DNA from: Macrostomum lignano
Lineage: Eukaryota
NCBI GenBank assembly: GCA_002269645.1
Contig: NIVC01004882.1
Location: 1-32,455 of the forward strand
Direction: 5' to 3'
Length of the DNA stretch: 32,455 nt
The position numbers and the translations under genes are program-made. Numbering within the stretch: position 1 is the stretch's first letter; every line of letters starts with the position of its first letter. Shown one piece after another: positions 5,613-31,834 of this stretch. The notes under the pieces were generated by a model, which was not told where the DNA came from, did no database searches, and worked only from the letters and a program-made list of their open reading frames with translations.

Positions 5613-8177
5613 ATGATGAAGCTTATATTGTTGATGCTACTAAGCCTTCTAATTTGTTCTGCATCAGGTGAACAGATGCCACGTTTTGTCTATTCTCAGT
5701 CTGCCAAGCTGCTTCTTGTCTGGAATGATGTTTGGGAAGCTGGAACACAGAACTCCATGGTTCTTCTTAGCTCAAACAGCAAAATCACACTCAGAATTCG
5801 AGTTGATGGCGTGGCCAGCGGATCCGGTCTCAAGCGAACTCTTTTGTATAGTTGCCCAACAAAGTCCTCGGTGGGTTCAATTAACTTGACATCTGTGACT
5901 ACTAGTCCAACATCACCGCTATGTAGCTCAGACATCGCATTCACACTGAGGGCCACAGCCACAAGTGACGAATTCGAACTGACAATGTCAAGTTCTTCTC
6001 TAACCTATTCCACCGTGTTTTCATCTAACGTGATCCTGACCGCAAAGGTGGAATATTCTGGTGGAGTTTTGATGTCCAACAACCTGACAATGTGGAACTT
6101 GGACCCTATCAGCGACTTTCCGGCAAGTTCGTCAAGTCCTAGCGGATATGATCGGCGCTTTCTCACAGAGAACTCAATTCTTCTGCTGACTCGAATGAAT
6201 TTAGGATCGGGAGAGTTCAACAGCACCGATTTTATAGACAACCGGCTAGTGTCTGCAGTGCAGTCTGCTCCAATGTTCTTCAGGCAGAAGCTGAATTTAG
6301 GCGCGATTTTACATCTTGATCCGAGTGGTTGTTCAAATGTTCAGTACGACCGTGCATACATGTTCACCACATACGACTCCAAGATAACTAGTGTCCAAAT
6401 GACTCGAATGAAGACTATGTACCTCGACCGAAAAACTGGGCAGCTTTGGTATTCGAGGTGTCAGTTGCACCATGCAGTCCATCAGTTATATTTGGATAGA
6501 GGATCTCCTTCCGCAATCGGCATTTGCTTGTCAGTTTCCTTCTCAGGCGATGTTGTGCCATACGCAAAGATTAGTGCCGTAAGAGAGCGCATTCTTAGCT
6601 CAGATTTTTCTTATTCGACCTGTTCTGAACCTCGGAGTGGAAACTGTATGCTAGTGCCAGACACCGAGCAAAACGTCACCATCTATTCAAGCATGGACAA
6701 CACTCCGTTGGTGTGCCCGATTGTCTGCGCTGATTCAGCAACTTCGTTCACATTTTATCAAAATGGTCAGAAGCTGATACCAGCTTCTTCTGACTGGAGC
6801 GACTTTGGAGCGCAAGGTGTTCGGATTGCGAGAACTTCGAACATCATTGAGTTTTCCAAAGATGTCACGTCAAGCCAGGCCGGTGAGTACAGGTGTATCG
6901 CTGGGGGCGCCAGCTTTACCTACTATGTTTCGGTTGTCTCAATGCCAACATTCTCAGCGAGTATTGGTGGTCAAACCGCCACTGTACCCTCAAAGGTGTT
7001 CGCCATGCAGGGTGAGAGTCTGTCCTACAGCTGTGGAGTAACATACTCGGGTCTCAGCTCAACAGTGTCGTTGCAGCCTCTGTTCTTTCTGCCCTCCGTG
7101 TCCAGTAGCGTTTTGACATGGACTGAGCAAAGTGTGGCGAGTTTTAATAATTTTGTCAGTCCCAGTGGCAGTTCAGCCGTCAGTATCAGCACGCCAGCAG
7201 TTGGAGCTGGAGTTCAGCTGATGAATGTCTCAATTCAAAGTGTACCACCTCAGCATCCAAGTTTTGGTTACAATTTTACTCACAGATTCTTGTGCAATGC
7301 CACAGTGTCAGGAACCGATGCAGCAAACTTGGGAATGTCCAGCTATGGCACACAAAGTGGCGGTGACATTGTGTATGTCCCTCGACCAACAAAGGAGAAC
7401 TTCGTTCTAGGTGAAAATAATGACTGTGCAACACAAAAGTGTCACCTTGGAAACGGTGCGACGTTCAATTTCGCTCTTAGTCGTGAGTACTCGTCCTACT
7501 TGAATTATATTGGAGTGGATGTGGATTTGTTCCTTCGCATCGACAATCTTCTACTGACTGACGTTAAGATTCTCATGAGCAGCAACGTTTCAATCATTAG
7601 GTCGAACTGGACAAGCATCAGTTACGAGATATTGCCGATCACGGATGAAGCAGTTCGAACTGAGCTGCAGAAGCGAAGCAGCCTGACTCCGGTGTACAAC
7701 TTTCGGTATAGAAATGGGTCCGAAATGGGCAATGCGAAAATTCAGAAGGGTCGATATGGATCACCGACTGTCGCTCTCGGTTCAAAAGACTGTCGTACAG
7801 ATCCGTTGTGTTTTTACTCGACTGACTTTGATGCCTCTGGCAGCTTGAGCTTCCTTTCCGTCACTCTGGACTTCAAAAAACCGCAGCCGCCACTGTCGAC
7901 CGCCAACATGACAATAATGATAGTGGTTATTGTCGTTTGTGTTGTGCTAATCATTGTCTTGATTGTACTTGTTGTCTACTTTGCCAAGCGCGAACCGGCA
8001 AAGAGTTACGCCCTGGAGGAGAAGGAGCTGGAGCAGGGGCGCAATCCAAATGCGGAGGCTAAAGATGAAGAGTTCAAAGAGTATGTGCGCCAGTCAGAGG
8101 CTCCGGGGATGAGGGGAGACGACATTCAGATGCACGGCACAGCTTATGATAATTCCAGTTTTATGTACGGTGAGTAA
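5613..8177 (+). CDS. Gene A main exon: type I transmembrane Ig-superfamily cell-surface protein with an L1/neuroglian-like juxtamembrane tail
   Basis: 854-aa ORF. Signal peptide MMKLILLMLLSLLICSASG. Ig-like domain with LVCP...FYQNG...QAGEYRC (about 6660-6941). Second Ig-like domain with GESLSYSC...HRFLCNAT. TM helix IMIVVIVVCVVLIIVLIVLVVYF. Tail KREPAKSYALEEKELEQGRNPNAEAKDEEFKEY. Colinear with B and C, with conserved cysteines. Probably spliced at 8169/8170. Confidence 0.9.
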   Translation: MMKLILLMLLSLLICSASGEQMPRFVYSQSAKLLLVWNDVWEAGTQNSMVLLSSNSKITLRIRVDGVASGSGLKRTLLYSCPTKSSVGSINLTSVTTSPTSPLCSSDIAFTLRATATSDEFELTMSSSSLTYSTVFSSNVILTAKVEYSGGVLMSNNLTMWNLDPISDFPASSSSPSGYDRRFLTENSILLLTRMNLGSGEFNSTDFIDNRLVSAVQSAPMFFRQKLNLGAILHLDPSGCSNVQYDRAYMFTTYDSKITSVQMTRMKTMYLDRKTGQLWYSRCQLHHAVHQLYLDRGSPSAIGICLSVSFSGDVVPYAKISAVRERILSSDFSYSTCSEPRSGNCMLVPDTEQNVTIYSSMDNTPLVCPIVCADSATSFTFYQNGQKLIPASSDWSDFGAQGVRIARTSNIIEFSKDVTSSQAGEYRCIAGGASFTYYVSVVSMPTFSASIGGQTATVPSKVFAMQGESLSYSCGVTYSGLSSTVSLQPLFFLPSVSSSVLTWTEQSVASFNNFVSPSGSSAVSISTPAVGAGVQLMNVSIQSVPPQHPSFGYNFTHRFLCNATVSGTDAANLGMSSYGTQSGGDIVYVPRPTKENFVLGENNDCATQKCHLGNGATFNFALSREYSSYLNYIGVDVDLFLRIDNLLLTDVKILMSSNVSIIRSNWTSISYEILPITDEAVRTELQKRSSLTPVYNFRYRNGSEMGNAKIQKGRYGSPTVALGSKDCRTDPLCFYSTDFDASGSLSFLSVTLDFKKPQPPLSTANMTIMIVVIVVCVVLIIVLIVLVVYFAKREPAKSYALEEKELEQGRNPNAEAKDEEFKEYVRQSEAPGMRGDDIQMHGTAYDNSSFMYGE

Positions 8178-8284: not shown

Positions 8285-8355
8285 AGAGCGTAGAACCTGA
8301 CCAAGCAGTGGCCGCCCCAGAGAACATTCAGGTGGAGCAGACTGATCAGGTGTGA
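8285..8355 (+). CDS. Candidate terminal coding exon of gene A (ESVEPDQAVAAPENIQVEQTDQV*)
   Basis: Donor ACG|GTGAGT at 8169/8170, a 115-nt AT-rich intron, acceptor AATTTCCAG| at 8284. The phase-1 join gives an open 23-codon GC-richer exon ending in TGA at 8353-8355; the spliced product is 875 aa. Confidence 0.7.
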
Positions 8356-9857: not shown

Positions 9858-10142
9858 GGGCTGTAGCCCAGTGGTTCGAGCGTCGGACTCACGACTGAAA
9901 GGTCGGGGGTTCGATTATTGACCCAACTCAAAACAATTTGTGTCCTTAAGCAAGACACTTAACTCTGCATTGCTTCAGTTCTCCCAACTGTAAAATGGGT
10001 GCAAACATTAGCTGGGGACAATTGAGGCTGTGTGTGGCGACCCCCAGTCCTTGGGCTGAACAGCAGTACGCAGCCTTCAGATGCGCCTGCACATCAGATG
10101 CACAGATGCACATCTGGCCGTTGCAATATTGATTATTAATTA
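9858..10142 (+). mobile_element. tRNA-derived CORE-type SINE
   Basis: Pol III A box TAGCCCAGTGG (9864-9874) and B box GGTTCGATT (9908-9916), followed by TGTGTCCTTAAGCAAGACACTTAAC...CTTCAGTTCTCCCAACTGTAAAATGGG (9939-9999), which resembles the MIR/CORE domain. AT-rich tail. Confidence 0.75.
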
Positions 10143-10164
10143 GAGGAGTAACTTCTCTCCGTTA

Positions 10165-10839
10165 CAACAACAACAACAAAGTACACTGGATAGTCTCTGG
10201 TGTCACAGGGCGCGTCTCAAGGCTAGAGTGCAAACATAGGCCGCTCCGCCGTCAGAGTCCGGGGCGCCGGCGTCAGCCAGCAGGCAGTCGACGAAACGCC
10301 GAGTGCGCGCCTGTCCTCGCCGGTAGGGTGCCTGCAGCGTGAGCAGCAGCACCTCCTGCACCGGCTGTGGGCAGTACGACTCGGCGCGGATGATATGACC
10401 TGCCAGCTGGAGTCGCCGACGGCGCAGCAGGTCACTTGGACGGGCCAGATCGAGTCGAGAGACTCGATCAAGATCAATTCAAGATCAGCTCATCGCTGAT
10501 CTTGAAGGCGGTGCGCAGCAGGCCAGCGTGCGCCGCGTCGACTTGATGTTCGAGCGAGTCGAGTCTCGGCGTTGTAAAGCAGGACGGTTTCGACTACCGC
10601 CTGGAACAGCGCCGCCCTCTGGCGGTCCGGAAGGGCCTCAGACTGCAGGATCGCCCTCACAGAGCGGAAGGCAGCCCAGGCAAGCCCGCGGCGACGACGC
10701 AGATCCTCGCGTACATCGGGGACCAGACCACCGAGGTAGACGAACTTCTGACATCGCGGAAGTTCCGTTGCCTGTCCGTCAGCGCCTCGGCATAGGATAG
10801 CAGCCTCGATGTCGTCCGGCACGCACAGCACGACGGTCT
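10165..10839 (-). mobile_element. 5'-truncated RTE-clade non-LTR retrotransposon (frameshifted C-terminal ORF fragment)
   Basis: Minus-strand peptides FVYLGG...RRRRGLAWAAF...VETVLLYNAET and DLLRRRRLQLAGHIIRAE...RRAL*, a (TTG)n 3' tail, and a 9-bp TSD TCTCCGTTA at 10156-10164 and 10840-10848. Confidence 0.9.
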
Positions 10840-11371
10840 TCTCCGTTAATAAGCTATAAAGACCTCAAGTTCTTCCACTCTTTTATGTCCATGGACGATT
10901 TCTTTCTCGATCCAACTGTACTTACGACAAAGAGAGAAACTGGCGTAATACTGATCTTACACAGCAATTTAACTCACCATAGAACTTACAGCAGTTTAGA
11001 GCAGACCCCCCCAGGTGAGAAATCGGCAATTTGGTAACTGAAAATAAGCAACGTGTAATATACAGACGAATTGTAATACTTGAAGTATACTCCGCACTTT
11101 TGTAATGATAGCAGTCAACCAATTTTTTGGCTTCCTCATCGAAAAATTCAGTAAAGCCAATCTTAGCCACGAAAAAATCTCGTAGATACGCTCGTATAGG
11201 AAATAATATGCATTTATTGTTGACTGCATCGCTATTCGAAACATGATTATGAATTGAGCTTTCACGAGATTTGGAAGGAAACTTAAGGCTTACTGGCAGC
11301 CTTCTTTGTAAGTGTTCGATCTGACTCCCTAATGAGATACGAACAATTACGGCAATCATATTGTTATGATT

Positions 11372-11520
11372 GTCAGCCAGTCGACGAAAGGCCGAGTGCG
11401 CGCGTGTCGTCAGCCGTAGCACCTAGCTGTTGCACCGGTTGTTAGTTGATGTGATCGATAGCGCAACAGGTCGCTTAGACAGTTGAGCAGGCCGGTGGGG
11501 CGACACAGTGCCGTGCTGAC
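11372..11520 (-). mobile_element. Older degenerate fragment of the same RTE family
   Basis: GTCAGCCAG..TCGACGAAAGGCCGAGTGCGCGC...GCACCGG...GCGCAACAGGTCGCTTAGAC aligns by eye to 10272-10440. Confidence 0.65.
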
Positions 11521-12639
11521 AGTATGTCAAGTTAGTGTTTATACGGGTATTACGTCAGCCGAATGTGATCGGTGGTACACTGCAAAAGTACTCATTTGCC
11601 AGCGACATCCATATAGACGTTGGAAGCCGTTTTTTTTTGTATGGCAGTGCCGCTCTATGTATTTCGCTCATCGCCTGTGTTGCACGCGCAAGCTTGTCAG
11701 TGTTGTAAGAACAATAAGAATCAATGAGTCCATTAGTGCTTGCAGATTCTTGTAAGCATGCTACTTCATCTATTGGTACATTGTGTACGGAATGTACTTG
11801 CACTCAAGAATTTTTCAACAATTGTACATGTAAAGTTAGAGTCAGCGATTGAATGGTATAAATTATTTAATCGTCTTTATTGTAGATAAGCTATTCTACG
11901 TAGTCGAGCCATTAGCTTCAACAATTGTTCACCATGGACTTGGATTTTCATTCAAGACTTTTGTCAAGTAGCTAAAGAGACATTTTAATTTCAAGTAATG
12001 GAAATGAAGTCAAAATGGTATTTCACTATACCGTGGCTTGTCATGCAACTGTGGAAAACTTTTCGTAACGTAAAATACTGTTACCGGTTTTAAATCGTTT
12101 TTATAAACTTCCTTCTGGCATAACAAATTTTCTAAGAAGTCTGACATTTACATCATATAAGTGAATTTTCATTTGTTATATTTTCTCTATAATAATTCTT
12201 TTAATCTAAGACATCATTCCATTTTTATTTTAAAAATGCATCGGCACGAATTTAAAGCTTGCGCCTTTGGCACACTGCTATGTAGCTAGACCCGAATCGT
12301 GTAGTTGCAGCAAAAACGGTCGAAATCTGAATCAATCTTCTGCTTTAGTTGCTTCTATAACTACCTGCAGTTCGTCACGGTATTTGTAAGTAATAACGTT
12401 TCTTTTTTCGATATATTATTAATTTAGATGTAACGTGCACGCAAATATTTAGCTCAATATTTGTGCTGTAGAGATAGTTATTCTATTGCCAAACTAAAAT
12501 TGAGTTCAGTAAAAACTTTAATTAGCGAATCTTAGTGAAATAACTGCAGTTGGCTTTACTATTAAGCTTGCAATAATCGAATTATAGGGTGCCAATATTT
12601 CAATGCATATTTCACTCATGTCCATCCAATGTCCAGATT

Positions 12640-15156
12640 ATGGCCTTCTTGGCGCTATTCTTCCTGGCGCTGGTCTCCGGTTGCACGCTCGCCACCCAGC
12701 AGATGCCGCGGTTCCAGTTCTCACCGTCCAGCAAGGTGTTGCTTTCCTGGAGCGACACCTGGGAGGTCGGATCGTCCAACATGCTGTCGATTCTCACCGA
12801 GGGCAAGCACATCAACATTCAGGTGTCCGTGAGCGGCGATCGCGGCGAAAGTGGCCTAAAAAGAGTTCTAATTTACGAGTGCCCGCAATCCCAGGCCCAA
12901 ATGATTGACATGGACACTCTCCAATCGAGCTTGTCTCCCGAACATCGATGCCCGAATACCATTCCATTCACTGTACAGGCGGGCAACTCCGAAAACCATT
13001 TTCAACTGAAGATGAAAGCCTCAGAGGTGCACTATACCCAGGTGGCTAGCAGGAGAGTGAAACTCGTTGTGCGGGTCGAATGGTCTGGCGGGGCAATCCA
13101 GTCCAATCCGCTCTTTCTGTACAACTTTGACCCACTTGGCGCATTTAGCGTTGGAAAGATGGGAGCATTGGATTTAAAATTTCTTACCCCTGCCGCGATT
13201 GAGCTGATGACCAGGTTGAACTATTCCAGCCCACTTGACGACCAGTTTCCAGCTGTACCCTTCATTGAATCGTCAATTTCAAGCTTTGTCAAAAACTCAC
13301 CGCAGTTCGTCAGGAGCAAAATAACACTAGGCTCAAGCCTGTACTTTGATGCAGGCTCCTGCTTGCACAATCAACTGGGAAAGGCCACGCTGTTTACAAG
13401 CTACTACTCCAAATTTGACTTGCGACATCAAAAGCTTCAAAAAATAATGCACCTGGATGTAGAGAGCGGCTATTTAGACTTTTCTGCTTGCGGTTTAAAA
13501 CAGGAGATTACCTCATTTTATCATGAAAAGAAGCCGCAGTATACCATTGGAATCTGCACCATCATTTCGTTCTCAGGAGAATCTGAACCCTACTTAAAAA
13601 TTCAGGCAGCAGATCAGCGCTATTCAATTGACAAAGTCCATTACTCCGGATGTCCCATATGGTCTACAGCCTGCAAAGTGGCACCAAATGCTAAGAAAAC
13701 TTTGACCATAATGGCCGGCATGGACAACACCGCCCTCGTCTGTCCCATTCTGTGCAGCGATAAAAGCCAGACGTATCAATTTTTCAGAGACGGCAACCCA
13801 CTTTATGCGTCCCAATTAGAGGAGTGGACAGTCATAGATGGCATTCGGGTGTCGAGAACTGGCAACATCATCGAGTTTACACCTTCCGTCTCAAGTGCTC
13901 ATTCCGGGATATACAAATGTGATGCTGGATCGGAACACTTTTTTGAGTTCAACGTCACTGTGGTCTCGATGCCGCACTTTGCTGTGACCTACTCTTCTGC
14001 AGCCAGTGGAATTCCAAGCTCTGAAAGTTCGGGTCTGTTGCCTGAGAAGGTGTTCGCGATGGAGGGCGAATCTCTGTTCTACAGCTGTACAGTGATGTTC
14101 TCTGGATTGAAGTCGGTCACAGTGGAGCCAACGTTCTACATGCCAATGGTCAGTAACGGCAAGGTGAACTGGGACCGTCTGACAGATGAGGCATTTCGTC
14201 AAAAGTTTTCAAATGGAGACAGTTGGATGAGCGTGACTACGACCTCAACTTCGACTTCAAGTAAAACTTTGACAATGGACGTGATTCGCGTTCCCCCAGC
14301 TAATCCGTCACTGGGCACCAACTTCAGTCATCGATTTGAATGCAATGCTTCTCTTAATCAGTTTGAGTCTGTTTCACAGGTGGGCATGTCAGAGTATCGT
14401 AATCAAACGGGTGCCGATGTCTTTTTTCTAAATCGCCTGACGAAGGACAGTTTTCTCATAAACCCAAACAACAATTGTAGCGTTCAGAAATGCAGCGTCT
14501 CGAATGGCGCCAAGTTCGAATTTGCTCTTTCGGAAAGCACCGCAGCCTACCTCCGGGACGTCGGGGTCGAGGTTTCTGCTTACTTCATGTTGGACGATCT
14601 TCTTCTTGAAAATGTGAAGTCCTTGTTTGTGAAAGACGCTTCTGCCATCAGATTTGACGCTAAAACTTTTACTCTGACTTACAAAGTTTTGCCAATATCT
14701 CAGGAAGGCGTTTTGAATGAGCTGCAGAAACGAAAAAACCTTACAGCCGTTTACAATTTCCGCTATCAGCCAAAAACGGCTTTGACAAACCTTCGACACA
14801 ACAAAAGTGCTTACGGCAGTCCAAGCGTCGCTCTCGGCCAAAGAGACTGCCGGGCGGACAAGTTATGCTTTTACTCCACCGACTTTGATTTATCTAATGG
14901 GCTTGAATTTCTTCGAGTTGACCTGGCCTTTCTAGATACACCATTACCCGAGCCTGGAGTCGCTTCTACTCGTACTTCGGGTGTGATTGTCAGAGTGGCC
15001 ATCGCTGCCAGTGTGGCTTTGATTGTTGGCCTGGTGGCAGCTTACCTCATGACCAGGACGCCTGAAAGGGCTTACCAAGTTGAGGAGAAAGAGAAGATGG
15101 GCACAAAGCAGATGCTGAACGCTTCCATTGCGTCCATTTACCTAGAGCTGTCGTGA
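12640..15156 (+). CDS. Gene B: intronless type I transmembrane Ig-superfamily protein with a short 34-aa tail (838 aa)
   Basis: The first ATG is at 12640 (the ORF-track GTG start is not a eukaryotic start). Signal peptide MAFLALFFLALVSGCTLA. Ig motifs LVCP...FFRDG...HSGIYKC and GESLFYSC...HRFECNAS. TM GVIVRVAIAASVALIVGLVAAYLM. Tail has deletions relative to C. The ORF is intact. Confidence 0.88.
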   Translation: MAFLALFFLALVSGCTLATQQMPRFQFSPSSKVLLSWSDTWEVGSSNMLSILTEGKHINIQVSVSGDRGESGLKRVLIYECPQSQAQMIDMDTLQSSLSPEHRCPNTIPFTVQAGNSENHFQLKMKASEVHYTQVASRRVKLVVRVEWSGGAIQSNPLFLYNFDPLGAFSVGKMGALDLKFLTPAAIELMTRLNYSSPLDDQFPAVPFIESSISSFVKNSPQFVRSKITLGSSLYFDAGSCLHNQLGKATLFTSYYSKFDLRHQKLQKIMHLDVESGYLDFSACGLKQEITSFYHEKKPQYTIGICTIISFSGESEPYLKIQAADQRYSIDKVHYSGCPIWSTACKVAPNAKKTLTIMAGMDNTALVCPILCSDKSQTYQFFRDGNPLYASQLEEWTVIDGIRVSRTGNIIEFTPSVSSAHSGIYKCDAGSEHFFEFNVTVVSMPHFAVTYSSAASGIPSSESSGLLPEKVFAMEGESLFYSCTVMFSGLKSVTVEPTFYMPMVSNGKVNWDRLTDEAFRQKFSNGDSWMSVTTTSTSTSSKTLTMDVIRVPPANPSLGTNFSHRFECNASLNQFESVSQVGMSEYRNQTGADVFFLNRLTKDSFLINPNNNCSVQKCSVSNGAKFEFALSESTAAYLRDVGVEVSAYFMLDDLLLENVKSLFVKDASAIRFDAKTFTLTYKVLPISQEGVLNELQKRKNLTAVYNFRYQPKTALTNLRHNKSAYGSPSVALGQRDCRADKLCFYSTDFDLSNGLEFLRVDLAFLDTPLPEPGVASTRTSGVIVRVAIAASVALIVGLVAAYLMTRTPERAYQVEEKEKMGTKQMLNASIASIYLELS

Positions 15157-17224
15157 TTGAGATATGACACATCGACAGACAGCACAGAAAATAATGCATG
15201 CATCGTTTAATACTGTTTTTCTATTTAAGTCTTTATGCCAGGAGTGTTTCTGAGACCGTGCAAATATGTTAAAATATCTTAGTAATTGGAGCTGGTGTTT
15301 TAGAATAGGTACTCCAAAAATTTCCTACTTTTTCATAAAAAGTTAACTAGACCCCGAATTAGAAGACAAACTGTAATAACGAGCACAATTACAAGCGTAC
15401 TCGTAAGTTCCACAGTACAGGTGCTGCTTGTTGTGTCTTTTATACTCTGAAAGATACTTACAGACGCTTCTGTGTTCGGTACTTTTTAAATCTGCGAGTA
15501 TATCATACAATCGAATTATTAAGTAAGTTTTTGCTTTCATTTTTCGAAGGCTACTCTCTGTAAAATTCATCATTATTGCCATCACGCGACTCATGTGGAA
15601 GTCCTACGAATATTTGCAACCGTGGACAACTGATGTAGAAGGACTTCAGTTGTACATGATTGCGATACAAAATAGCGTTGCTTGTCCGCCAGCTCGTATT
15701 TTACTAAAGACAAAAAGAATTAACCAGTAACTATTACTATATTTATATCACTAATTCAGCCGATGACCTAAATGTTATTAAACTCTAGCTATGCACGCAA
15801 CTCTGAAATAATAAATGTTTAATGCAAGTATTATGTTCTATGATTAACATGTAAAAGTTCAATTACGAGTACACACTATAACTATTAGTTATGTCCTTTC
15901 CAACCTTCCCCAACCTACTCAACCTACATATGGAGTTTCAAGGAAGAAAGTCAATCTATGGCTAGATGTGACCACACAGACAGAATGCTCAATCAGTCTA
16001 TGTCTACATGTATGACTCCGAAACGCATGCGCGTGCACACTACTTTTTCGGTGAAAACGCTCAAAGTAATGCCGAGGAAACTGATAGAGCATCATGTTTA
16101 ATAGTTAAAGAAAACTGGAAAGAAATCGGCTCATATCAAGTATGCTAAGAAAGACAAAACTAACTCACTACATTGAAATAAAGCGCACTCTTGCATCTTT
16201 ACTGTCGATGGCTTGCACCAATATCAAATGGTGTAAAATTTAAAATGTCAAAGTGTAAAATGGGAACGTGATAGATAGACAGGAAGAGCATTTAGAAACT
16301 GGGCAGTCATTAGGGAGCATGAACCAGAAACCTTTAAGCATGAGCTTGCTTGCATCATGATTAACTTCTTGCATACCTCTCTATGAAATTATTGTAATCA
16401 TCTGGCAGATCGGCAAGATCTTTCGGCAAAATTTTGTCACAAGACAATTTGACACTCATTGTTTGTCTCTGAGAACGACTTGGCTAGCAAGAATACGAGT
16501 AAAGGTTCAGACCTCAGCCTGTTGCTCAAACAGTCTGCTGTCAATGGCATATACGCAAGCTATCTGAGACTAAGCTGACGTGCTAAAATTTGCTTCTGCT
16601 TAAAACTCTACGATGATCGTTACGGTTACTCGAATTCCTTCATCAGAAAAATAGTCTATGCGCCTATCAATTTTTTGATTGACGCAGTTTTCAGCTTAAA
16701 ATTAGCCAACTGTGTAAGTTCTGTGATTATGAACGGTCATCTGTGACCTTCTCTCTATTTATGTTTTCTTTTAAAGATAAACTTCCTAATTCAGTTGGAA
16801 AAGCTTTTTCCAGAATTCATGAAAATTAGAGATTCGATAAGAATCACTTCAACTGAAAATTCATGACCAGCCAAGTAGAAGGCCAGCTGCTTCGGGTAGC
16901 TGCTTGGAGAAGATTTATTTTTAAGATATCACCAGGGTCTTGCTGTGAACTTTTCTTCGCCATAATTACTGAATACTGTGAAGGTATAAAAGTATTTAAT
17001 GATAGGAAGAAATAACCAGTAAACACAATGTTTACGAGTATAACAACCATATAACTAAGGTGCTTCTTTCTGTTGATCCTGAAGCAAGTAGCCAACTAAT
17101 TCTGCTAACTATTTTGCCGTCAAAAATGTAAAAAGGAAATCTCATTTGAGCCATTACGAGCTAGGTGTTGGCTGCAGGTGTTTGTAACACAGTCAGATAG
17201 CAAATATTTGATTAATAATTACTA

Positions 17225-17400
17225 CATATATACTATACTACCACATATACTAAATGCCCAAGATCTGTTTGTTTGTCTTTAAGGCTCTAGACATTGAACC
17301 GATTGACCAATTTTGATCGCGTTTTCGCCAAAAGATCTGTAATTATCTGGAAGGAAGACAGTTTAAATTTCTTTAATCTGTTTCAATGCTACATGTATTA
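17225..17400 (+). mobile_element. Helitron-like 5' terminal fragment
   Basis: TATACTA repeats then TATACTAAATGCCCAAGATCTGTTTGTTTGTC, the same architecture as the minus-strand ends at 264, 1488 and 2684. The end coordinate is uncertain. Confidence 0.3.
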
Positions 17401-19174: not shown

Positions 19175-20499
19175 TGTAGTGACTGACGCGAAACAGAGAT
19201 AATTTGCTGAATAAGACTTCGGCCCCGACTTGGGCATTGGATTGCGATACATATTGCTGTGATGGGGCTCAAGGGCTCGGTCCTTTCGTGCCCCTTTCCC
19301 AGACCCGGGTTCGCGCACTGACCCTGGCTGCGGTCCTCCACTGACACGCGTACGACGCAGAGCTGCTTGGGTTGGGACCGGCGTACGACGCACTTAATCC
19401 CTCTAAGGTGCCTAGTACAGATGCAGACCCAAATGACTTGCAAATGGGAAGGCTCACCAGCCGCGATTTCGGTCGTACAACTCGGGAACAGCGCCGACAG
19501 AGCAGTGGGAGTATCGATATTCTTTAATTGTATTTGTCGGACAATTCGGACACTTAATAGTGAAGTACAGGCTGTTTGCTTCCCGGATTAGGCCCTTGCG
19601 GATTACCTTATGACTCGTGCCTCTTCAGTGGGAAGTTCTCTCAACTCTCAGTAGCGTAGGTAGTGCTGCCACCAGTTCCTTCAGGTCTCGGCCTTCGATG
19701 AGGTGAGCTTCCCGTCGGAACGAAATAAACAAGTCAACGAACTCAGCACAGCGTGCAGATTTGCAGATTAATGAACAAGGCGTCCTGATCAGCAGCTCCC
19801 CGCCGGGCTCAGGGGTGGCTGGGAAGGCAGTGTTAGCCTCCCTTAGGCTTGGGCTTTAGTGGGGTTTCAGTCAGACCAGTACAAACGGATTCAGTACGCA
19901 AAGGGCACTTAGTTAGACACTGACGCGCACGGGATCTTAGTGAATTCTCCGCAGATAAGAAGCCATTCCTTGACGGAAACAAGGGAGAGGGGTCCTATTT
20001 ATAACCGGGAAACACCCACGCACAAGACCTCGTGACCTCGTTCTATTTTTAGAACTGACGTCACTTGAGGGTCTCCCGGCAGAGTGCACATGGCTGTGAC
20101 TCAGTTGCTATTTTTAGCAACATGAGTCACTCCTCTCTTTAGAGAAGGGAGGGGGCCGAAAGCATGTGACTCTTCCGGTAAACAGGGCCAACAAGTGCAG
20201 TAAACATGTTTACTGCACTTTAGGACTCAAAGAACAGATCGAGGATCTGTTATGTGACTCGCTCACATGACAGGGGAAAGAAAGACCGAGCGAAACAGAG
20301 ACAGTCCACAGCAGAGAAGCTGAGGGCTGAGAAACAAGGGGCAAAACGGGAAAAAACGAGGGAAGGGAGCAGCAACAGACAGACAAAAGGAGGGAGGCGG
20401 GAAGCTGACCAGCGGCAGACAGCAACCCAGGGCGAGGGCGAGGGCAAGGGCGACTGCTGACGAAGTGCGACGCCTAACACTAACTAGCGGATCACTACA
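19175..20499 (-). mobile_element. LTR-like segment (~1.3 kb)
   Basis: Bounded by the inverted termini TGTAGTGA...TCACTACA. Minus-strand TATAAATA at 20003-19996 with clustered enhancer-like motifs upstream of it. No matching TSD, PBS or PPT was found. Confidence 0.5.
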
Positions 20500-21351
20500 A
20501 TAGCAACCAACGCTGGCAAAATCACCGGGGAGCCACGGAGTCTCACGGGGGTCCGAAAAAATAGGCAGCAAACTAGGGGTTGAGGGCGCGGGATAAAGGC
20601 AGAAAAGGGGGCTTAGACAACAGCATGGGACACACATGAGCCGTACCAGCCAATCGCCGGGGGCGCAGCACGGCAGACTGGGACTGGCAGCCAATCACGA
20701 TCTATAGGGGCGGGGCAGCTAGGCTAACAAAATAATGGGGTGGGGTCGCACGCAAAGAATGGGGGGGTCGCACGCAGAGAATGGGGGTTGAATAACAGAC
20801 AAGGCCTAGGCAGAGAGGGGGGGCTACGCACGTGCAGAAGTGAAGGGGGTGAGTCAGAAAATATCTGAGGAGGGGGGAGAGGCCGGCCAGACTGGCCCGG
20901 CGTAGAATAGTGCACTCAACTCAAGTTACAATAACACATTCATGACAATATATTGAGACCCAACCTAACAGTTCGATACGAGTGAAACGTAAATCCAATT
21001 ACACGAACACCAACCTAGCGTGTACATCAGCTCAATGTGCAATTGGACTAAAATAGCCCGCGCAGTGACTGAGGGTGGCCGTGTATAACATCGTACCCAC
21101 GTGAACTTTTACAGTAAAATAAAAACGAGATTAAAAGCTATTTTAACAGTGAAAAATCATGCAGAAATTGGCAGTTCATAAATCAGTCCGAATCAAATTT
21201 GTCAGAAAGCAAAACTCAATCACGAAAGTCCGGTCTCGGGATTTTGCAGCTTCTTGGATGCGGGCGGTATTCAATTGGTGGCTCCGCCGCACCAGACTCG
21301 ATCCCCGTCGCAGCGCCAAAAGTCGCCGCAGACTGTCCGGTGCTTTCCTTC

Positions 21352-24345
<2,994 letters not shown>

Positions 24346-24429
24346 GAATGGTGGACTTTAGGCAGGGTTAGTTTAGGATTAGGTTAGGGTTATGGTTAAA
24401 CCATAAAAGGGTTTCCTTTTCGAAAATAA

Positions 24430-24830
24430 AAGACTCGTTGGTGGATTGCTAAGGGATCAAGGCTCATTTGGGAATTGCTGAGATGACAAAGCTCGGAGAG
24501 GGGGAATTATGGAATTCTGGGACTCTTGGGGAGATGTCAATAATATGTAAAAAGCTCAATATGAAAAAGCTCACATGGGAATCGCTGAAATGCTAAGGCT
24601 CACTGTGAATAGCTGAGATGTCCAAGGCTCATAAGAGAATTGCTGAAATTTCTGCCGAGATAAAATTCAATAAATGTCAATGTTCATTGGTTAATTGTTA
24701 TAATACTGTGGCTCATGGGGGAATAGCCGAAATACTGTGACTCGGCAGGGATAGGGTTGGGGTTCAATCATAAGTCTCATGTGGAATTTCCAAGCTGTGA
24801 ATTGCTAAGTGGTCAGGCCTTAGGGGTGGT
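24430..24830. repeat. Degenerate ~30-bp minisatellite, same family as 18580-19174
   Basis: AAGGCTCA / GAATTGCTGAGATG motifs, preceded by a degenerate TTAGG/TTAGGG tract at 24365-24395. Confidence 0.7.
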
Positions 24831-25481
24831 CAGGAGAAAGGAGAAGCAACCTCATCTCTGTTAATAAGCTACATTGTTTATAAAGGCATCAAGTTTTTCC
24901 ACTTTCGTCCAGTTCTTTCTATTCAACATTTATGTACGTACGGGATAAGTACGAGAGTTTCGCAAGATCTAAATGGAATTTAGTAAGACTGATCTTACAC
25001 AGGGCGCAAAGTTCTAACTTACGATTTGAGTTACCATTCAACTTACTTATCGTATAGCTCGTATGACTGCGTTGAGTTTTACAATATTTGGAAGCACTAA
25101 CTATGCACATTTTGTATTTAATAATCGAAAAATCAGCTGATCCGATTCTTTATCTTGCAAAAATTGTCTACGTGTAGGTCGAAGTGTCGAAGTAAATTTT
25201 AAAATTTGACCCTGCGATTTCTACGAGTAGCCAGAATTTCTAGCTACATCCGAAGTAAAAAAATCGGAGCTTTTGAACGGAATTTCGCACCTTCAAACCA
25301 GATTCCAATCAGATCTCTGCCTTAAGTTACATTGATTCTGCGTTTAGAGTCTTTGTTTGCGTATTTGTATATTTTTTACAATTGCTTTTCAGCCTAGAAA
25401 AATCGCTCATTGTTCAAAACTAAAGCAAAAACCAATTGTAAGGATTTTCGAAACCATGCACTAAAAATAGCGCAGTCTCCG

Positions 25482-25712
25482 CTCCTCCCTCTTCTCTCCT
25501 CTCCTCTCCTCTCCTCTCCTCTCCTCTCCTCTCCTCTCCTCTCTCCTCTCCTCTCCTCCCCTCTCCTCTCCTCTCCTCCCCTCTCCTCCCCTCTCCTCTC
25601 CTCTCCTCTCCTCCCCTCTCCTCCCTCTCCTCCCTCCCTCCCCTCTCCTCCCCTCTCCTCCCCTCTCTTCTCCTCTCCTCTCCTGTTCTCTCCTCTTCTC
25701 TCCTCTTCTTTT
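25482..25712 (+). repeat. (CTCCT)n polypyrimidine microsatellite
   Basis: Uninterrupted C/T run from 25482 to 25684, then a further pyrimidine run after a single G. Confidence 0.95.
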
Positions 25713-26378
25713 ATCTCATCTCTCCCGTTTTATCCACTCCGGCTTTACTATAGGTTTAATTAACAGCAAAATTTGACACATCACACTTTGTGTAGTCCTG
25801 ATAATTAAGTTGCTGACTTTGTACTCGTTTGTATCGAACCTACAGGTTTTCAATCGAAAAGTCGCACCAATTTCTAGTTAAATACTACACACATTGAGAA
25901 ATACTCAAATGCAATTTTTTATCAAACAAACGATCATACCTAAAGAAGGTATGCTGACGGTCTGCTGATGCCTGTACATTACACAGGTGGATGATGACGT
26001 TATAGGTCAGCCGAATGCTATCGATGCAAATCGAAAATACTCATTTGCTAGCGACAAACATATATATTGATTGCAAGTCGGTTTTTGTATGGGAGTGCTG
26101 CGCTACGGGTGACAGTTATTAATTCATCACCTGTTGCTCGAGCGAGTTCGTTAGAGCCCAGGTCTGAAAGCTGTAAGAGCAAAGAGAATCAACGATTCCA
26201 TAGATTATCTTACATACAGGTTTTCAAAAGCATGTTAGATACTTCATTTTGCGTACATTGGTACATCCACAAGGATCTCTTCCATTAAGTTGTAGAAATA
26301 ATTTACCCATAGTTATATCTGATCTGTAATAAATTATTTTTTATTGAAAATGAAAGATTTTTCTGCTTTAGTATTGCA

Positions 26379-28179
26379 CTAGCAATCTAGTGCGGCCCCC
26401 CTTCGGGGCGCCCAATAAGAAAGGAGCAAAAATAGTTCATGGAAAACAATAAAAAAGCACATTTTCTTAAACACCATTCCTTCTTCACTTTAAAAAATCA
26501 CCTTATTCGTGTAAAATTGTCACGGACAAAGATGTTTGCGAAGTGAAAGAATCACTTTTTCTCTAAAATTAACAAACAAACAACAAAATATAGCTTCCCC
26601 TAAATAGAAAATATTCCCAAGACAGCAAGCACCCCCCTCCAAAAGTAAACAACCGCAGATAACAAGCATCCTCTAATGGTCATAGCAAGCATCACCCCAG
26701 ATAGCAAGCATTTGCAGATAGCAAGCATCCCCCAAATATTGTAGAAGTATCCACCCAGATAGGAAGCATCCTGCAGATAGCAAGCACCCCCCAAGATATT
26801 ATAGAAGCATCCTGCAGATAGCAAGCACCCCCAAGATATTATAGAAGCATCCTGCAGATAGCAAGCACCCCCAAGATATTATAGAAGCATCCTGCAGATA
26901 GCAAGCACCCCCCAGATATTATAGAAGCATCCTGCAGATAGCAAGCACCCCCAAGATATTATAGAAGCATCCTGCAGATAGCAAGCACCCCCCAGATATT
27001 ATAGAAGCATCCTGCAGATAGCAAGCACCCCCCCCCCAGATATTATAGAAGCATCCTGCAGATAGCAAGCACCCCCCAAGATATTATAGAAGCATCCTGC
27101 AGATAGCAAGCACCCCCCAAGATATTATAGAAGCATCCTGCAGATAGCAAGCACCCCCCCAGATATTATAGAAGCATCCTGCAGATAGCAAGCACCCCCC
27201 CAGATATTATAGAAGCATCCTGCAGATAGCAAGCACCCCCCAAGATATTATAGAAGCATCCTGCAGATAGCAAGCACCCCCCAAGATATTATAGAAGCAT
27301 CCTGCAGATAGCAAGCACCCCCCAGATATTATAGAAGCATCCTGCAGATAGCAAGCACCCCCCCCCCAGATATTATAGAAGCATCCTGCAGATAGCAAGC
27401 ACCCCCCAAGATATTATAGAAGCATCCTGCAGATAGCAAGCACCCCCCAAGATATTATAGAAGCATCCTGCAGATAGCAAGCACCCCCCCAGATATTATA
27501 GAAGCATCCTGCAGATAGCAAGCACCCCCCCAGATATTATAGAAGCATCCTGCAGATAGCAAGCACCCCCCAAGATATTATAGAAGCATCCTGCAGATAG
27601 CAAGCACCCCCCCCAGATATTATAGAAGCATCCTGCAGATAGCAAGCACCCCCCCAGATATTATAGAAGCATCCTGCAGATAGCAAGCACCCCCCAAGAT
27701 ATTATAGAAGCATCCTGCAGATAGCAAGCACCCCCCAAGATATTATAGAAGCATCCGCCCAAATAGCAAGCATCCTGCAGATAGCAAGAATCCCTAAATA
27801 GCAAGCATCCCTGGATAGAAAGAATCCCATACATGTAGCCAGTACCCCCCCTCCCAAATAGCAAGTATCCCCGCTCGAGAGCAAGCATCCTCCACATAGC
27901 AAGCATCCGCGAGACAGCAAGTAGCTAATGCAAATGTTACCTCCGCTAATGCAATAATCGCTTTCTCAGGTTGTGCAGCCATCCACGGCTCAGCGAGCGC
28001 AATAATCTCTTTTTTAGACAGCGCAAAAATCAGCTTCTCAGCTAGTGCAATAATCCTTTACTCATCAAGTCCAAAAATCGATGTCTCAGCTAGTTCAATA
28101 GCCCTTTCTAATCTAATCCTTGGCTTATCAAGCGTCAAATAGCTAAATTAGAATAAATTTGGGGGAAAAAGCTCTCAGA
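26379..28179 (-). mobile_element. Candidate non-autonomous Helitron carrying a satellite array
   Basis: Minus-strand 3' end is a GC hairpin with a GAA loop (GCGCCCCGAAGGGGGGCCGC) followed by CTAG|T at 26382-26378. Possible A|TC 5' end at 28180/28179. The segment is absent from the paralogous region upstream of gene B. The right boundary is tentative. Confidence 0.4.
26600..27920. repeat. 40-44-bp tandem satellite GATAGCAAGCA(C)5-10(A)AGATATTATAGAAGCATCCTGCA
   Basis: About 24 near-identical units from 26776 to ~27757 that differ only in the C run; degenerate ~20-bp monomers on both edges. Confidence 0.95.
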
Positions 28180-28658
28180 TGCATCAGTCAAAACGTAAAA
28201 ATTTTTGCCTGTTTTAATTCGTTTCTATAAACTTCTTGCTAGTACGATTATAACAGATTTTATTTTAAAAAACCACACTTTACACAATATACCTAAACTT
28301 TTATTAGTAATTTTTTCTAAATTATTTTTCTTACTTGATTCAAAAAACTTTTAATTTTTAATAAAAAAATGCATCAGCACGAATTCAAATTATTCGCCTC
28401 AAATACACTACCCTACAATATAGCTAGACCTTATTTGTGTAGTTGCAGCAACGGTGGAAATATAAATCAATCTTCTGCTTGTTACAGTTGCTTCTGGAAC
28501 TACCTCGAGTTTGCTATATTTTTGCAAGTAATAACTTTTATTTATTGTTAAAATATTAATTTCCTTTGCACGCGAATATCATGCCTTATGTATCTTTAGT
28601 TTGCATGTTAGAAATAGAAATGAATCTACGAGCGTAGTGCGTATGAAGTGATTGATAT

Positions 28659-28904
28659 GAGTCCCTGAGAATTGCCCGCCGAGTTTTTTCCCGCCGAGGT
28701 TTTCCTTCCCCCCCAAAAAAAAATATGCATTTGATATGCAGTTACTATAAAAACGTTTTGATCGTGTTAATCTCTTTATTAAGACTTACTATATGGGAAG
28801 GCAATGCAGACAAAACCAGCCGTGTGGCTAAATGCGCTGCAGGAAAAAAGCATTGCGGGCAAACCTCGGCGGGAAAAATCTCGGCGGGCAATTCTCGTGC
28901 TCCC
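28659..28904. mobile_element. MITE (246 bp, 9-bp TSD, possibly Mutator-type)
   Basis: 36-bp subterminal inverted repeats with one mismatch (28667-28702 and 28861-28896); direct repeat GATTGATAT at 28650-28658 and 28905-28913; absent upstream of gene B. Confidence 0.85.
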
Positions 28905-29101
28905 GATTGATATAAATGCGAGCATAAAGCATAAAGAGCTATTTAATCGCCAAACTAAAATTAAGTTCAGTAAAAACTCTATAATTAGCTAATCTTAGTG
29001 AAATAACTGTATTTGGCTTTCTATTAAGCTTGCAATAATCGAATTATAGGGTGCCAATATTTCAATGCATATTTCACTCATGTCCATCCAATGTCCAGAT
29101 T

Positions 29102-31834
29102 ATGGCCTTCTTGGCGCTATTCTTCTTGGCGCTGGTCTCCGGTTGCACGCTCGCCACCCAGCAGATGCCGCGGTTCCAGTTCTCACCGTCCAGCAAGGTG
29201 TTGCTTTCCTGGAGCGACACCTGGGAGGTCGGATCGTCCAACATGCTGTCGATTCTCACCGAGGGCAAGCACATCAACATTCAGGTGTCCGTGAGCGGCG
29301 ATCGCGGCGAAAGCGGCCTAAAAAGAGTTCTAATTTACGAGTGCCCGCAATCCCAGGCCCAAAGGATTGACATGGACACTCTCCAATCGAGCTTGTCTCC
29401 CGAACATCGATGCCCGAATACCATTCCATTCACTGTACAGGCGGGCAACTCCGAGAACCATTTTCAACTGAAGATGAAAGCCTCAGAGGTGCACTATACC
29501 CAGGTGGCTAGCAGGAGAGTGAAACTCGTTGTGCGGGTCGAATGGTCTGGCGGGGCAATCCAGTCCAATCCGCTCTTTCTGTACAACTTTGACCCACTTG
29601 GCGCATTTAGCGTTGGAAAGATGGGAGCATTGGATTTAAAATTTCTTACCCCTGCCGCGATTAAGCTGATGACCAGGTTGAACTATTCCAGCCCACTTGA
29701 CGACCAGTTTCCAGCTGTACCCTTCATTGAATCGTCAATTTCAAGCTTTGTGAAAAACTCACCGGAGTTCGTCAGGAGCAAAATAACACTAGGCTCAAGC
29801 CTGTACTTTGATGCAGGGTCCTGCTTGCACAATCAACTGGGAAAGGCCACGCTGTTTACAAGCTACTACTCCAAATTTGACTTGCGACATCAAAAGCTTC
29901 AAAAAATAATGCACCTGGATGTAGAGAGCGGCTATTTAGACTTTTCTGCTTGCGGTTTAAAACAGGAGATTACCTCATTTTATCATGAAAAGAAGCCGCA
30001 GTATACCATTGGAATCTGCACCATCATTTCGTTCTCCGGAGAATCTGAACCCTACCTAAAAATACAGGCAGCAGATCAGCGCTATTCAATTGATAAAGTC
30101 CATTACTCCGGATGTCCCAAATGGTCTACAGCCTGCAAAGTGGCACCAAATGCTAAGAAAACTTTGACCATAATGGCCGGCATGGACAACACCGCCCTCG
30201 TTTGTCCCATTCTGTGCAACGATAAAAGCCAGACGTATCAATTTTTCAGAGACGGCAACCCACTTTATGCGTCGCAAAAAGAGGAGTGGACAGTCATAGA
30301 TGGCATTCGGGTGTCGAGAACTGGTAACATCATCGAGTTTACACCTTCCGTCTCAAGTGCTCATTCCGGGATATACAAGTGTGATGCTGGATCGGAACAC
30401 TTTTTTGAGTTCAACGTCACTGTGGTCTCGATGCCGCACTTTGCTGTGACCTACTCTTCTGCAGCCAGTGGAATTCCAAGCTCTGAAAGTTCGGGTCTGT
30501 TGCCTGAGAAGGTGTTCGCGATGGAGGGCGAATCTCTGTCCTATAACTGTACAGTGATGTTCTCTGGATTGAAGTCGGTCACAGTGGAGCCAACGTTCTA
30601 CATTCCAATGGTCAGCAACGACAAGGTGAACTGGGACCGTCTGACAGATGAGGCATTTCGTCAAAAGTTTTCAAATGGAGACAGTTGGATGAGCGTGACT
30701 ACGACCTCAACTTCGACTTCAAGTAAAACTTTGACAATGGACGTGATTCGCGTTCCCCCAGCTAATCCGTCACTGGGCACCAACTTCAGTCACCGATTTG
30801 AATGCAATGCTTCTCTTAATCAGTTTGAGTCTGTTTCACAGGTGGGCATGTCAGAGTATCGTACTCAAACGGGTGCCGATATCTTTTTTCTAAAGCGCCT
30901 GACGAAGAACGATTTTCTCATAAACCCAAACAACAATTGTAGCGTTCAGAAATGCAGCGTCTCGAATGGCGCCAAGTTCGAATTTGCTCTTTCGGAAAGC
31001 ACCGCAGCCTACCTTCGGGACGTCGGGGTCGAGGTTTCTGCTTACTTCATGTTGGACGATCTTCTTCTTGAAAATGTGAAGTCCTTGTTTGTCAAAGACG
31101 CTTCTGCCATCAGATTTGACGCTAAAACTTTTACTCTGACTTACAAAGTTTTGCCAATATCTCAGGAAGGCGTTTTGAATGAGCTGCAGAAACGAAAAAA
31201 CCTTACAGCCGTTTACAATTTCCGCTATCAGCCAAAAACGGCTTTGACAAACCTTCGACACAACAAAAGTGCTTACGGCAGTCCAAGCGTCGCTCTCGGC
31301 CAAAGAGACTGCCGGGCGGACAAGTTATGCTTTTACTCCACCGACTTTGATTTATCTAATGGGCTTGAATTTCTTCGAGTTGACTTGGCCTTTCTAGATA
31401 CATCATTAACCGAGCCTGGAATCGCTTCAACTTCGGGTGTGATTGTCGGAGTGGCCATCGCTGCCTGTGTGGCTTTGATTGTTGGCCTGGTGGCAGCTTA
31501 CTTCATGACTAGAACGCCTGAAAGGGCTTACCTAGTTGAGGAGAAGGAGATTCGTCTTGGACACAATCCGAAAGCTGAGGCCAAGAACGAAACCTTTAAA
31601 GACTACGTCAGGGCCGGTGCCGCCGACAATGAGGACGCGCCTGTGCAGTCGGTGGTGGGCACGAAGCAGATGCTGAACGCTTCCATTGTGTCCGTTCCAG
31701 TAAGGACGACCTGGAGCTGTCGTGATTGCGATATGACACGTCGACAAACAGCACAGACAGAATGTGCATGCGTCGTAGATATTGTTACTCTTATTCAAGT
31801 CTTTACGTCAGGAAAGACAGTGCATAGATGTTAA
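29102..31834 (+). CDS. Gene C: type I transmembrane Ig-superfamily protein, close paralog of B with a long L1-like tail (910 aa if unspliced)
   Basis: ATG at 29102; same architecture as B. TM GVIVGVAIAACVALIVGLVAAYFM. Tail TRTPERAYLVEEKEIRLGHNPKAEAKNETFKDY. The true C-terminus may be changed by splicing near 31648-31705. Confidence 0.88.
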   Translation: MAFLALFFLALVSGCTLATQQMPRFQFSPSSKVLLSWSDTWEVGSSNMLSILTEGKHINIQVSVSGDRGESGLKRVLIYECPQSQAQRIDMDTLQSSLSPEHRCPNTIPFTVQAGNSENHFQLKMKASEVHYTQVASRRVKLVVRVEWSGGAIQSNPLFLYNFDPLGAFSVGKMGALDLKFLTPAAIKLMTRLNYSSPLDDQFPAVPFIESSISSFVKNSPEFVRSKITLGSSLYFDAGSCLHNQLGKATLFTSYYSKFDLRHQKLQKIMHLDVESGYLDFSACGLKQEITSFYHEKKPQYTIGICTIISFSGESEPYLKIQAADQRYSIDKVHYSGCPKWSTACKVAPNAKKTLTIMAGMDNTALVCPILCNDKSQTYQFFRDGNPLYASQKEEWTVIDGIRVSRTGNIIEFTPSVSSAHSGIYKCDAGSEHFFEFNVTVVSMPHFAVTYSSAASGIPSSESSGLLPEKVFAMEGESLSYNCTVMFSGLKSVTVEPTFYIPMVSNDKVNWDRLTDEAFRQKFSNGDSWMSVTTTSTSTSSKTLTMDVIRVPPANPSLGTNFSHRFECNASLNQFESVSQVGMSEYRTQTGADIFFLKRLTKNDFLINPNNNCSVQKCSVSNGAKFEFALSESTAAYLRDVGVEVSAYFMLDDLLLENVKSLFVKDASAIRFDAKTFTLTYKVLPISQEGVLNELQKRKNLTAVYNFRYQPKTALTNLRHNKSAYGSPSVALGQRDCRADKLCFYSTDFDLSNGLEFLRVDLAFLDTSLTEPGIASTSGVIVGVAIAACVALIVGLVAAYFMTRTPERAYLVEEKEIRLGHNPKAEAKNETFKDYVRAGAADNEDAPVQSVVGTKQMLNASIVSVPVRTTWSCRDCDMTRRQTAQTECACVVDIVTLIQVFTSGKTVHRC

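Follow-up and report, generated by a model that had tools for sequence, protein, structure and literature searches.

What kind of protein is encoded by a tandem cluster of three large genes in the flatworm Macrostomum lignano, and what might such a cluster be for? The genes, here termed A, B and C, all lie on the + strand of contig NIVC01004882.1, positions 1 to 32,455 (this whole 32,455-nucleotide stretch is referred to below as ‘the window’). An initial annotation, made from the sequence by itself, had described them as an unrecognised family of receptors of the immunoglobulin (Ig) superfamily and had proposed a lineage-specific adhesion or self/non-self recognition locus. The explanation that best fits the evidence, and which we consider reasonably likely to be correct, is that A, B and C are Macrostomum-restricted type-I surface glycoproteins from a family with an L1-type cytoplasmic tail and a five-domain ectodomain, acting as adhesion or contact receptors. 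The family as a whole, including a fourth gene, D, beyond the window, probably comprises lineage-restricted receptors of that kind.

An open reading frame (ORF) scan of the window recovered three long same-strand ORFs (5613–8177, 12589–15156 and 29051–31834). ORFs of 2.5 kb in DNA of 40% GC, together with ratios of non-synonymous to synonymous substitution (dN/dS) of 0.30–0.44 between copies, place A, B and C far beyond chance ORFs. Each product is a type-I membrane glycoprotein of ~840–875 amino acids (aa), with a hydrophobic signal-like N-terminus, ~750 extracellular aa, a single C-terminal transmembrane helix (Kyte-Doolittle 2.6–4.1 over 19 aa) and a short charged tail; all three share a conserved cysteine pattern and carry 9–12 N-glycosylation sequons (NxS/T). 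This common anatomy confirms a tandem cluster of divergent membrane proteins of Ig-superfamily type, as initially annotated, and the sequence blocks quoted at that time (QMPRF, SGLKRxLxYxCP, MDNTxLVCPI and YGSPxVALGxxDCRxDxLCFYSTDF) are all present and conserved in the alignment. The accompanying estimate that A was ‘roughly a third identical’ to B and C was too low, protein alignment giving 40%.

The cytoplasmic tail had been missed, and it is here that a relationship to known proteins emerges. Pfam Bravo_FIGEY (PF13882) represents the cytoplasmic domain of L1, neurofascin, NrCAM and neuroglian. Three M. lignano paralogues scored above its curated cut-off of 23.8 bits (P0003, 37.4 bits; P0005, 56.7 bits; P0006, 60.9 bits), and the paralogue tails align with proteins of Lymnaea and Wuchereria that have Bravo_FIGEY or L1-like FIGxY tails, the alignment extending through the FxEDGSFIGxY block. 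FIGxY itself is present in these three paralogues as GSFIGGY or GSFIGEY, and P0006 gave a weak alignment (phmmer E = 2.7, 11.9 bits) with the neurofascin peptide of the neurofascin–ankyrin-3 fusion 7xce. In alignment, the A and C tails are colinear with those of P0003, P0005 and P0006 and keep the proximal half of the domain (KR..Y..EEKE...NPxAEAKxExFKxY), scoring 19.9 bits and, via P0002, 19.1 bits respectively. The tail of B, from which the conserved segment has been deleted, gave no Bravo_FIGEY match. In the tail alignment the FxEDGSFIGxY block is missing from A, B, C and P0004: at the position of FIGxY, A reads ...DNSSFMY/ESVEPDQ..., while B and C stop before it. Judged from sequence, the transmembrane-proximal tail is homologous to the cytoplasmic domain of L1CAM, neurofascin and neuroglian. 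The description ‘unrecognised family’ consequently holds for most of the ectodomain and not for the tail, which is of L1 type (Bravo_FIGEY 37–61 bits in three paralogues).

The first coding exon of gene A (5613..8169, from ORF and translation) encodes aa 1–852 and the first base of codon 853, and includes the transmembrane helix (7914–7982, from hydropathy) and the L1-type proximal tail (7983–8169, matching profile positions 2–44). Gene A does not end at the apparent ORF stop at 8177; it extends to 8355, through a GT...AG intron of 115 nt (8170..8284) and a last exon of 71 nt (8285..8355; 23 aa plus stop, without FIGxY), and the spliced translation has the same C-terminus as P0001. In P0005, P0020 and P0029, too, a small last exon, 26–28 codons in length, comes after the large coding exon or exons, and in P0005, for which FIGxY was read directly, this exon carries the FIGxY block. 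The gene A intron occupies the place that the last coding intron has in these three paralogues; its 23-codon last exon is unrelated to theirs, and B and C terminate earlier. Gene B (12640..15156) is a single coding exon of 838 aa, with ectodomain and transmembrane helix as in C. Gene C (29102..31725) encodes 875 aa after correction of a 1-nt deletion, and its proximal L1-type tail, NPKAEAKNETFKDY, lies at 31551–31655. Translation of B and C starts at the ATG codons at 12640 and 29102; the ORFs that open with GTG simply extend further upstream. The 910-aa partial model of C, P0002, has 35 extra residues that derive from an upstream, 5′ untranslated region (UTR)-like exon (28423..28542), located by tblastn of P0002 residues 1–40 and present in the transcript-derived GenBank model; the intron that follows it ends just before the coding exon, near 29093.

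The ectodomain was modelled with AlphaFold from an alignment of nine sequences (pLDDT 80.6, pTM 0.76; a run from five sequences, with pLDDT 40, was not used), and the model divides it into five domains. In gene A, with nucleotide limits taken from DSSP of the model, a signal peptide (5613–5669) is followed by D1, a beta-sandwich (~aa 20 to 165–170; 5670–6122), D2, an alpha/beta domain (~aa 180–330; 6123–6632), Ig-like domain 1 (Ig1; ~aa 350–446; 6633–6953), Ig-like domain 2 (Ig2; ~aa 455–590; 6954–7388) and D5, a membrane-proximal alpha/beta domain (~aa 597–745; 7389–7892 when the DCRxDxLCFYSTDFD loop is included). The ~330-aa N-terminal region of the initial annotation therefore exists, as two predicted domains rather than one. 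An invariant loop, DCRxDxxCFYSTDFD, follows D5 just outside the membrane and is predicted to be disulfide-bonded.

Membership of the superfamily calls for at least one domain with an Ig fold, B–F disulfide, core Trp and (D)xGxYxC, and the family has this. The family-invariant hallmarks are C368/C372...W395...G424xY426xC428 (LVCPIxC...W...GxYxC) in Ig1 and C474...W503...F559xC561 (SYxC...W...HRFxC) in Ig2, and the model forms a beta-sandwich at both 350–446 and 455–590. Pfam reached the Ig1 region only (aa 356–433; Ig_2/Ig_3, E 6.5e-4 to 0.1, sub-threshold), and Ig2 is assigned from its C...W...xFxC hallmarks and the AlphaFold model. The two Ig-like domains originally proposed are thus upheld by hallmarks and model, with a Pfam match, itself sub-threshold, for the first alone. 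None of the nine members gave a Pfam match to D1, D2 or D5, or to fn3, at E ≤ 5; no member matched I-set, and PDB sequences, searched with either gene A or the family profile, gave only marginal Ig matches. The N-terminal and membrane-proximal domains remain, as initially noted, without a recognisable sequence family. Nor was there any sign of internal duplication, domain-against-domain hhalign comparisons all giving probabilities of ≤1.6%.

Structural comparison by Foldseek against PDB gave 450 matches at E ≤ 0.001, and the top 50 listed were mostly proteins with multiple Ig domains. The top matches (7ol2, 8k53, 3kld, 1cs6, 5k6u and 5z5k) had E values of 1e-11 to 7e-16 at 9–11% sequence identity, with contactin-1 Ig1–6 at 6.7e-16 and CNTN2 Ig1–6 at 9.9e-16. 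Normalised to target length, TM-scores were 0.54–0.55 for Ig1–4 of CNTN4 (3kld), axonin-1 (1cs6) and DCC (5z5k) and 0.46–0.48 for Ig1–4 of Sidekick; linear three-Ig arrays among the matches (titin, IgLON) scored ~0.27–0.37. A pTM of 0.76 for five domains suggests that these are packed together rather than arranged as beads on a string, and the TM-scores hint at a folded head resembling that of contactins and L1.

The family appears to be confined to M. lignano. An exhaustive HMMER profile search over 1.84 billion representative proteins yielded 13 matches; each one covering the ectodomain was from M. lignano, and no full-length or ectodomain relative from elsewhere was found. The proposal of lineage specificity stands on this result, and the single-copy, full-length orthologues across phyla that the initial annotation had named as the mark of a known adhesion family did not appear among those representatives. 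Word-indexed protein searches recovered nothing beyond P0001, P0002 and a single tail fragment from Wuchereria, and none of 313 pattern matches in JGI metagenome contigs was confirmed as a relative. Databases already list members of the family, either as hypothetical proteins or under automatically assigned names; literature searches turned up no paper on these proteins, and none linking Bravo_FIGEY to Macrostomum.

Within M. lignano there are at least eight paralogue types sharing <55% mutual identity (A, B/C, D, P0003, P0004, P0005, P0006 and P0020), arranged in at least two tandem clusters plus a singleton. Two M. lignano database entries match genes of the window: BOX15_Mlig020816g1 shares 95% identity with A, and BOX15_Mlig003394g1 shares 99.9% with C. 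Gene D, the fourth member (~889 aa; 16976–19648 of NIVC01001317.1, locus L002), is found 3.7 kb downstream of C. Another tandem pair, made up of one P0020-type and one P0005-type gene, occupies 3102–6689 and 10001–12800 of locus L004 (NIVC01001207.1), both with the full Bravo_FIGEY tail, and a gene of P0006 type stands alone between XendoU and tyrosine-phosphatase genes (10001–17061 of locus L005, NIVC01000151.1). The genes of both loci have the layout described above, in which a small last exon comes after one or more large coding exons. Three more distant M. lignano proteins (P0007, P0009 and P0010) have D1-D2-Ig-Ig and a hydrophobic C-terminus, possibly a glycosylphosphatidylinositol (GPI) signal, and lack both D5 and the L1 tail, indicating that the head module occurs independently of the tail. 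P0009 and P0033 have consecutive accessions on one contig. A further protein, P0011, from an environmental eukaryotic contig (ctg142120l, ENA metagenome assembly ERZ25070786; locus L001, 5038–5595), has a transmembrane segment and an L1-type tail; its juxtamembrane IIFYSSEEDP...LNF weakly resembles CFYSTDFD...LDF of the family, reverse transcriptase fragments lie around it, and the 5 kb upstream on that contig contain no ectodomain.

From these observations a mechanism can be proposed. The ectodomain would mediate cell–cell or cell–matrix contact through its Ig-containing headpiece. The FIGQY segment in cell adhesion molecules (CAMs) of the L1 type binds ankyrin, so the full-tail paralogues with FIGxY presumably do likewise and, as L1-type CAMs do, would couple to the ankyrin–spectrin membrane skeleton. 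A, B and C would be tail-reduced derivatives, A and C retaining the juxtamembrane half and B not even that. Lacking FIGxY, they would bind outside the cell without ankyrin anchoring, and might act as mobile adhesion receptors, as co-receptors or as modulators of the full-length paralogues.

Several points weigh against this interpretation. A and C score below the Bravo_FIGEY cut-off and cover the proximal half of the profile only, so that they are assigned by alignment with the paralogues. D1, D2 and D5 have no detectable relatives, and the ectodomain does not have L1-family architecture, showing no fibronectin type III (FN3) domain and only two recognisable Ig domains. The structural comparison was of the whole model, and a ‘horseshoe’ head is hinted at by TM-scores and the high pTM of the nine-sequence model. 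We infer adhesive function, ankyrin coupling of the full-tail paralogues and the consequences of tail loss from the features described above. Finally, the shortened tail of B and the frameshifted end of C may reflect incipient pseudogenisation instead of new function.

Could these genes instead be a flatworm L1CAM/neuroglian, diverged so extremely that a whole gene descended from an ancestor with six Ig domains plus FN3 domains now shows D1, D2 and D5 as remodelled Ig or FN3 domains? The L1-type tail and the placing of FIGxY on a separate small last exon are consistent with this, as are the best whole-model matches, Ig1–4 of contactin, axonin, Sidekick and DCC: TM-scores of 0.46–0.55 over ~560–580 alignment columns would mean that more than two Ig domains superpose. 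D2 and D5 are, however, predicted to be alpha/beta rather than beta-sandwich domains, no member has a Pfam fn3 or I-set match, and hhalign finds D1, D2 and D5 unlike the family's own Ig domains. The relatives without D5 or tail (P0007, P0009 and P0010) suggest separate histories for head module and tail, favouring a tail joined to a head module over descent of a whole L1 gene. Such descent is, on balance, unlikely.

Like the L1-type CAMs (L1CAM, CHL1, neurofascin and NrCAM; neuroglian of Drosophila; LAD-1/SAX-7 of C. elegans), the family consists of type-I Ig-superfamily glycoproteins with a homologous transmembrane-proximal tail; the ankyrin-binding block FxEDGSFIGxY survives in P0003, P0005 and P0006, and the best structural matches are the related Ig1–4 headpieces of contactin and axonin. 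The L1-type plan as usually described, however, is six N-terminal Ig domains and three to five membrane-proximal FN3 domains, whereas here a beta-sandwich and two alpha/beta domains surround the two recognisable Ig domains, and no FN3 is present; the coding sequence is almost intronless, the at least eight paralogue types include tandem clusters, and A, B and C have lost FIGxY, B along with its whole conserved tail. By architecture, A, B and C are on present sequence evidence not members of the L1 family, though their tail is homologous. Contactins such as axonin-1 (TAG-1), together with Sidekick and DCC, are the top Foldseek matches (TM-score up to 0.55) to an ectodomain that is compact (pTM 0.76). 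Contactins are GPI-anchored and have six Ig and four FN3 domains; the present family has a transmembrane helix, a cytoplasmic tail and neither fn3 nor I-set matches, and at 9–11% identity the likeness is structural only. D5 lies directly before the membrane, as do SEA and SEA-like domains (dystroglycan, mucins, Notch, IA-2), and its order of elements by DSSP, beta-alpha-beta-(beta)-beta-alpha-beta, is reminiscent of their ferredoxin-like beta-alpha-beta-beta-alpha-beta fold, which often carries a G/S autoproteolysis site. It has no Pfam SEA match and no visible autoproteolysis motif of G/SVVV type.

B and C have exchanged sequence. Self-BLAST and windowed identity delimit a tract at 12476..15094 whose partner is 28937–31550, with 97.5% nucleotide identity and sharp edges; the flanks (including 11900–12475 and 15095–15900) are ~55–70% identical. 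Synonymous divergence (dS) between B and C is 0.043–0.045, and this low value, together with the abrupt drop in identity at the flanks, points to gene conversion over an older duplication rather than young duplication of a whole segment. Gene D tells a similar story: it is 46% identical to B/C overall, and its second Ig block (L002 18065–18696) is 83% identical in nucleotide sequence, so much closer to B/C than the rest that D appears to be a mosaic or to contain a conversion tract. We infer that the array evolves through tandem duplication and gene conversion while under purifying selection of moderate strength.

The ends of B and C raise the possibility that, in the window, these two are decaying duplicates and that only A-type and full-tail paralogues are functional. 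Immediately after the tract, at 15094, B has an in-frame deletion of 105 bp (equivalent to 31551–31655 of C), and near its 3′ end there is a second gap, of 12 bp (4 codons). In C, 1 nt is deleted after 31697 (31697/31698; GTTC-CAG vs GTTCACAG) relative to both NIVC01001317.1, the same locus, and the homeolog; the deletion puts the last 8 codons out of frame, the undisturbed reading ends at 31723–31725, and the ORF end at 31834 is a read-through of this frameshift. Window positions 18416–32455 match NIVC01001317.1 at 99.8% identity, and because the frameshift is missing from that GenBank contig it could stem from an assembly indel or be an allelic difference. Against decay, the 2.5-kb ORFs of B and C are intact through ectodomain and transmembrane helix, the B deletion is in frame, and dN/dS between B and C is 0.30–0.35. 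That the two are decaying duplicates seems to us quite unlikely.

Elsewhere in the family, dN/dS was 0.37 between A and its counterpart A′ and 0.43–0.44 between B or C and B′. A second copy of the A–B part, ~97% identical, is found on NIVC01002404.1, and by sequence is a putative homeolog or allele. The highest dN/dS for any domain was 0.98, in one domain with 13 substitutions; substitutions per domain were few, and none was clearly >1. Between A and A′ the two N-terminal domains gave 0.72 and 0.48, and the remainder ~0.23. Pairwise identity of the paralogues was even across the ectodomain (37–47% in each domain), with no hypervariable domain by this measure.

These data bear directly on the idea of a self/non-self, mating-partner or gamete recognition locus with polymorphic determinants, comparable with Hydractinia Alr or the fish NITRs. 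As in Alr1/Alr2 and NITR, divergent single-pass Ig-superfamily proteins form tandem clusters in one lineage and paralogues exchange sequence, the present array holding at least four paralogues that are 35–46% identical, with mosaic structure and gene conversion among neighbours, and the slightly raised dN/dS of the two N-terminal domains of A and A′ points the same way. The family has, however, no sequence or architectural relation to those systems; its ectodomain matched nothing outside M. lignano among the 1.84 billion representatives, and no sequence relation of it to any other family was detected. Overall dN/dS is 0.35–0.44, well below 1, with no domain above 1 on per-domain counts that are tiny; divergence is even, without a hypervariable membrane-distal domain; and the tail is of cytoskeleton-linker type rather than a signalling tail with ITAM/ITIM motifs. 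M. lignano is moreover solitary and non-colonial. The self/non-self part of the initial proposal thus has no positive evidence behind it, and we regard a recognition locus as improbable; our best guess is still adhesion or contact recognition.

It is extremely improbable that these are domesticated or resident envelope glycoprotein genes of viral or transposon origin, for although the single 2.5-kb coding exon contrasts with a mean of 4.9 introns per M. lignano gene (PMC5730564) and the intergenic DNA contains retroelement fragments, comparison by Foldseek with predicted viral structures found only generic multi-Ig repeats (TM-score ≤ 0.33), on which ground this origin was rejected, and there are no visible fusion-protein features, the L1-type tail is metazoan, a spliced UTR and 3′ introns are present, at least eight paralogue types are under purifying selection, and no gag/pol lies adjacent in the same orientation, the retroelement debris being on the opposite strand.

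Annotation of this assembly in GenBank derives solely from transcript evidence, namely RNA-seq and transcriptome data (PMC5730564), so the existence of GenBank models for A′ and C indicates transcription; the silence of the genes that the initial annotation had counted as fatal to its proposal is not what is seen. Searches by gene ID in the full texts and supplements of M. lignano papers gave nothing on expression by tissue or stage.

Outside the genes, the window also contains repeats and retroelement debris that does not belong to them. An RNase H fragment lies on the − strand between B and C (22061..22345; Pfam RNase_H, 29.9 bits) and was the sole significant Pfam match among intergenic ORFs. 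GC-rich (52–57%) minus-strand sequence at 19000–24000 and ~10490–10831 contains broken retroelement ORFs that look reverse transcriptase- or integrase-like by eye. Upstream of C, at 26763–27772, a 41-bp satellite is repeated 24.6 times at 96% matches and shows higher-order periodicity of 330 bp, and a (TCTCC)n microsatellite at 25476–25706 (46.6 copies) yields a spurious SPLLSS-repeat ORF (25410–25763). The left edge of the window carries a direct repeat (7–2685; unit ~1.24 kb, 7–1490 versus 1244–2685, 87% identity), which is missing from the homeologous locus L003, where a major facilitator superfamily (MFS) transporter gene lies upstream of A′.

A bolder and quite unlikely version of the adhesion-receptor interpretation can also be set out. 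The family would represent a new architecture in which an L1-type transmembrane segment and ankyrin-binding tail have been joined to a D1-D2-Ig-Ig head; D1, D2 and D5 would be undescribed folds; and the array would preserve the steps by which coupling to the cytoskeleton was lost, from the full FIGxY tail, through the half tail of A and C, to none in B. Macrostomum lignano is a reciprocally mating hermaphrodite, and these proteins might then serve Macrostomum-specific contact recognition, for instance when partners mate or when sperm meet the female tract.

To describe the cluster as an allorecognition locus would be unwarranted on present evidence. What it offers is an L1 tail on a very different, lineage-restricted ectodomain, expanded to at least eight paralogue types. 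If this reading is true, a core neural adhesion molecule would have undergone domain shuffling or radical remodelling, and M. lignano, which is amenable to transgenesis and RNA interference, would hold a natural tail-truncation series in which the contribution of ankyrin coupling could be studied.

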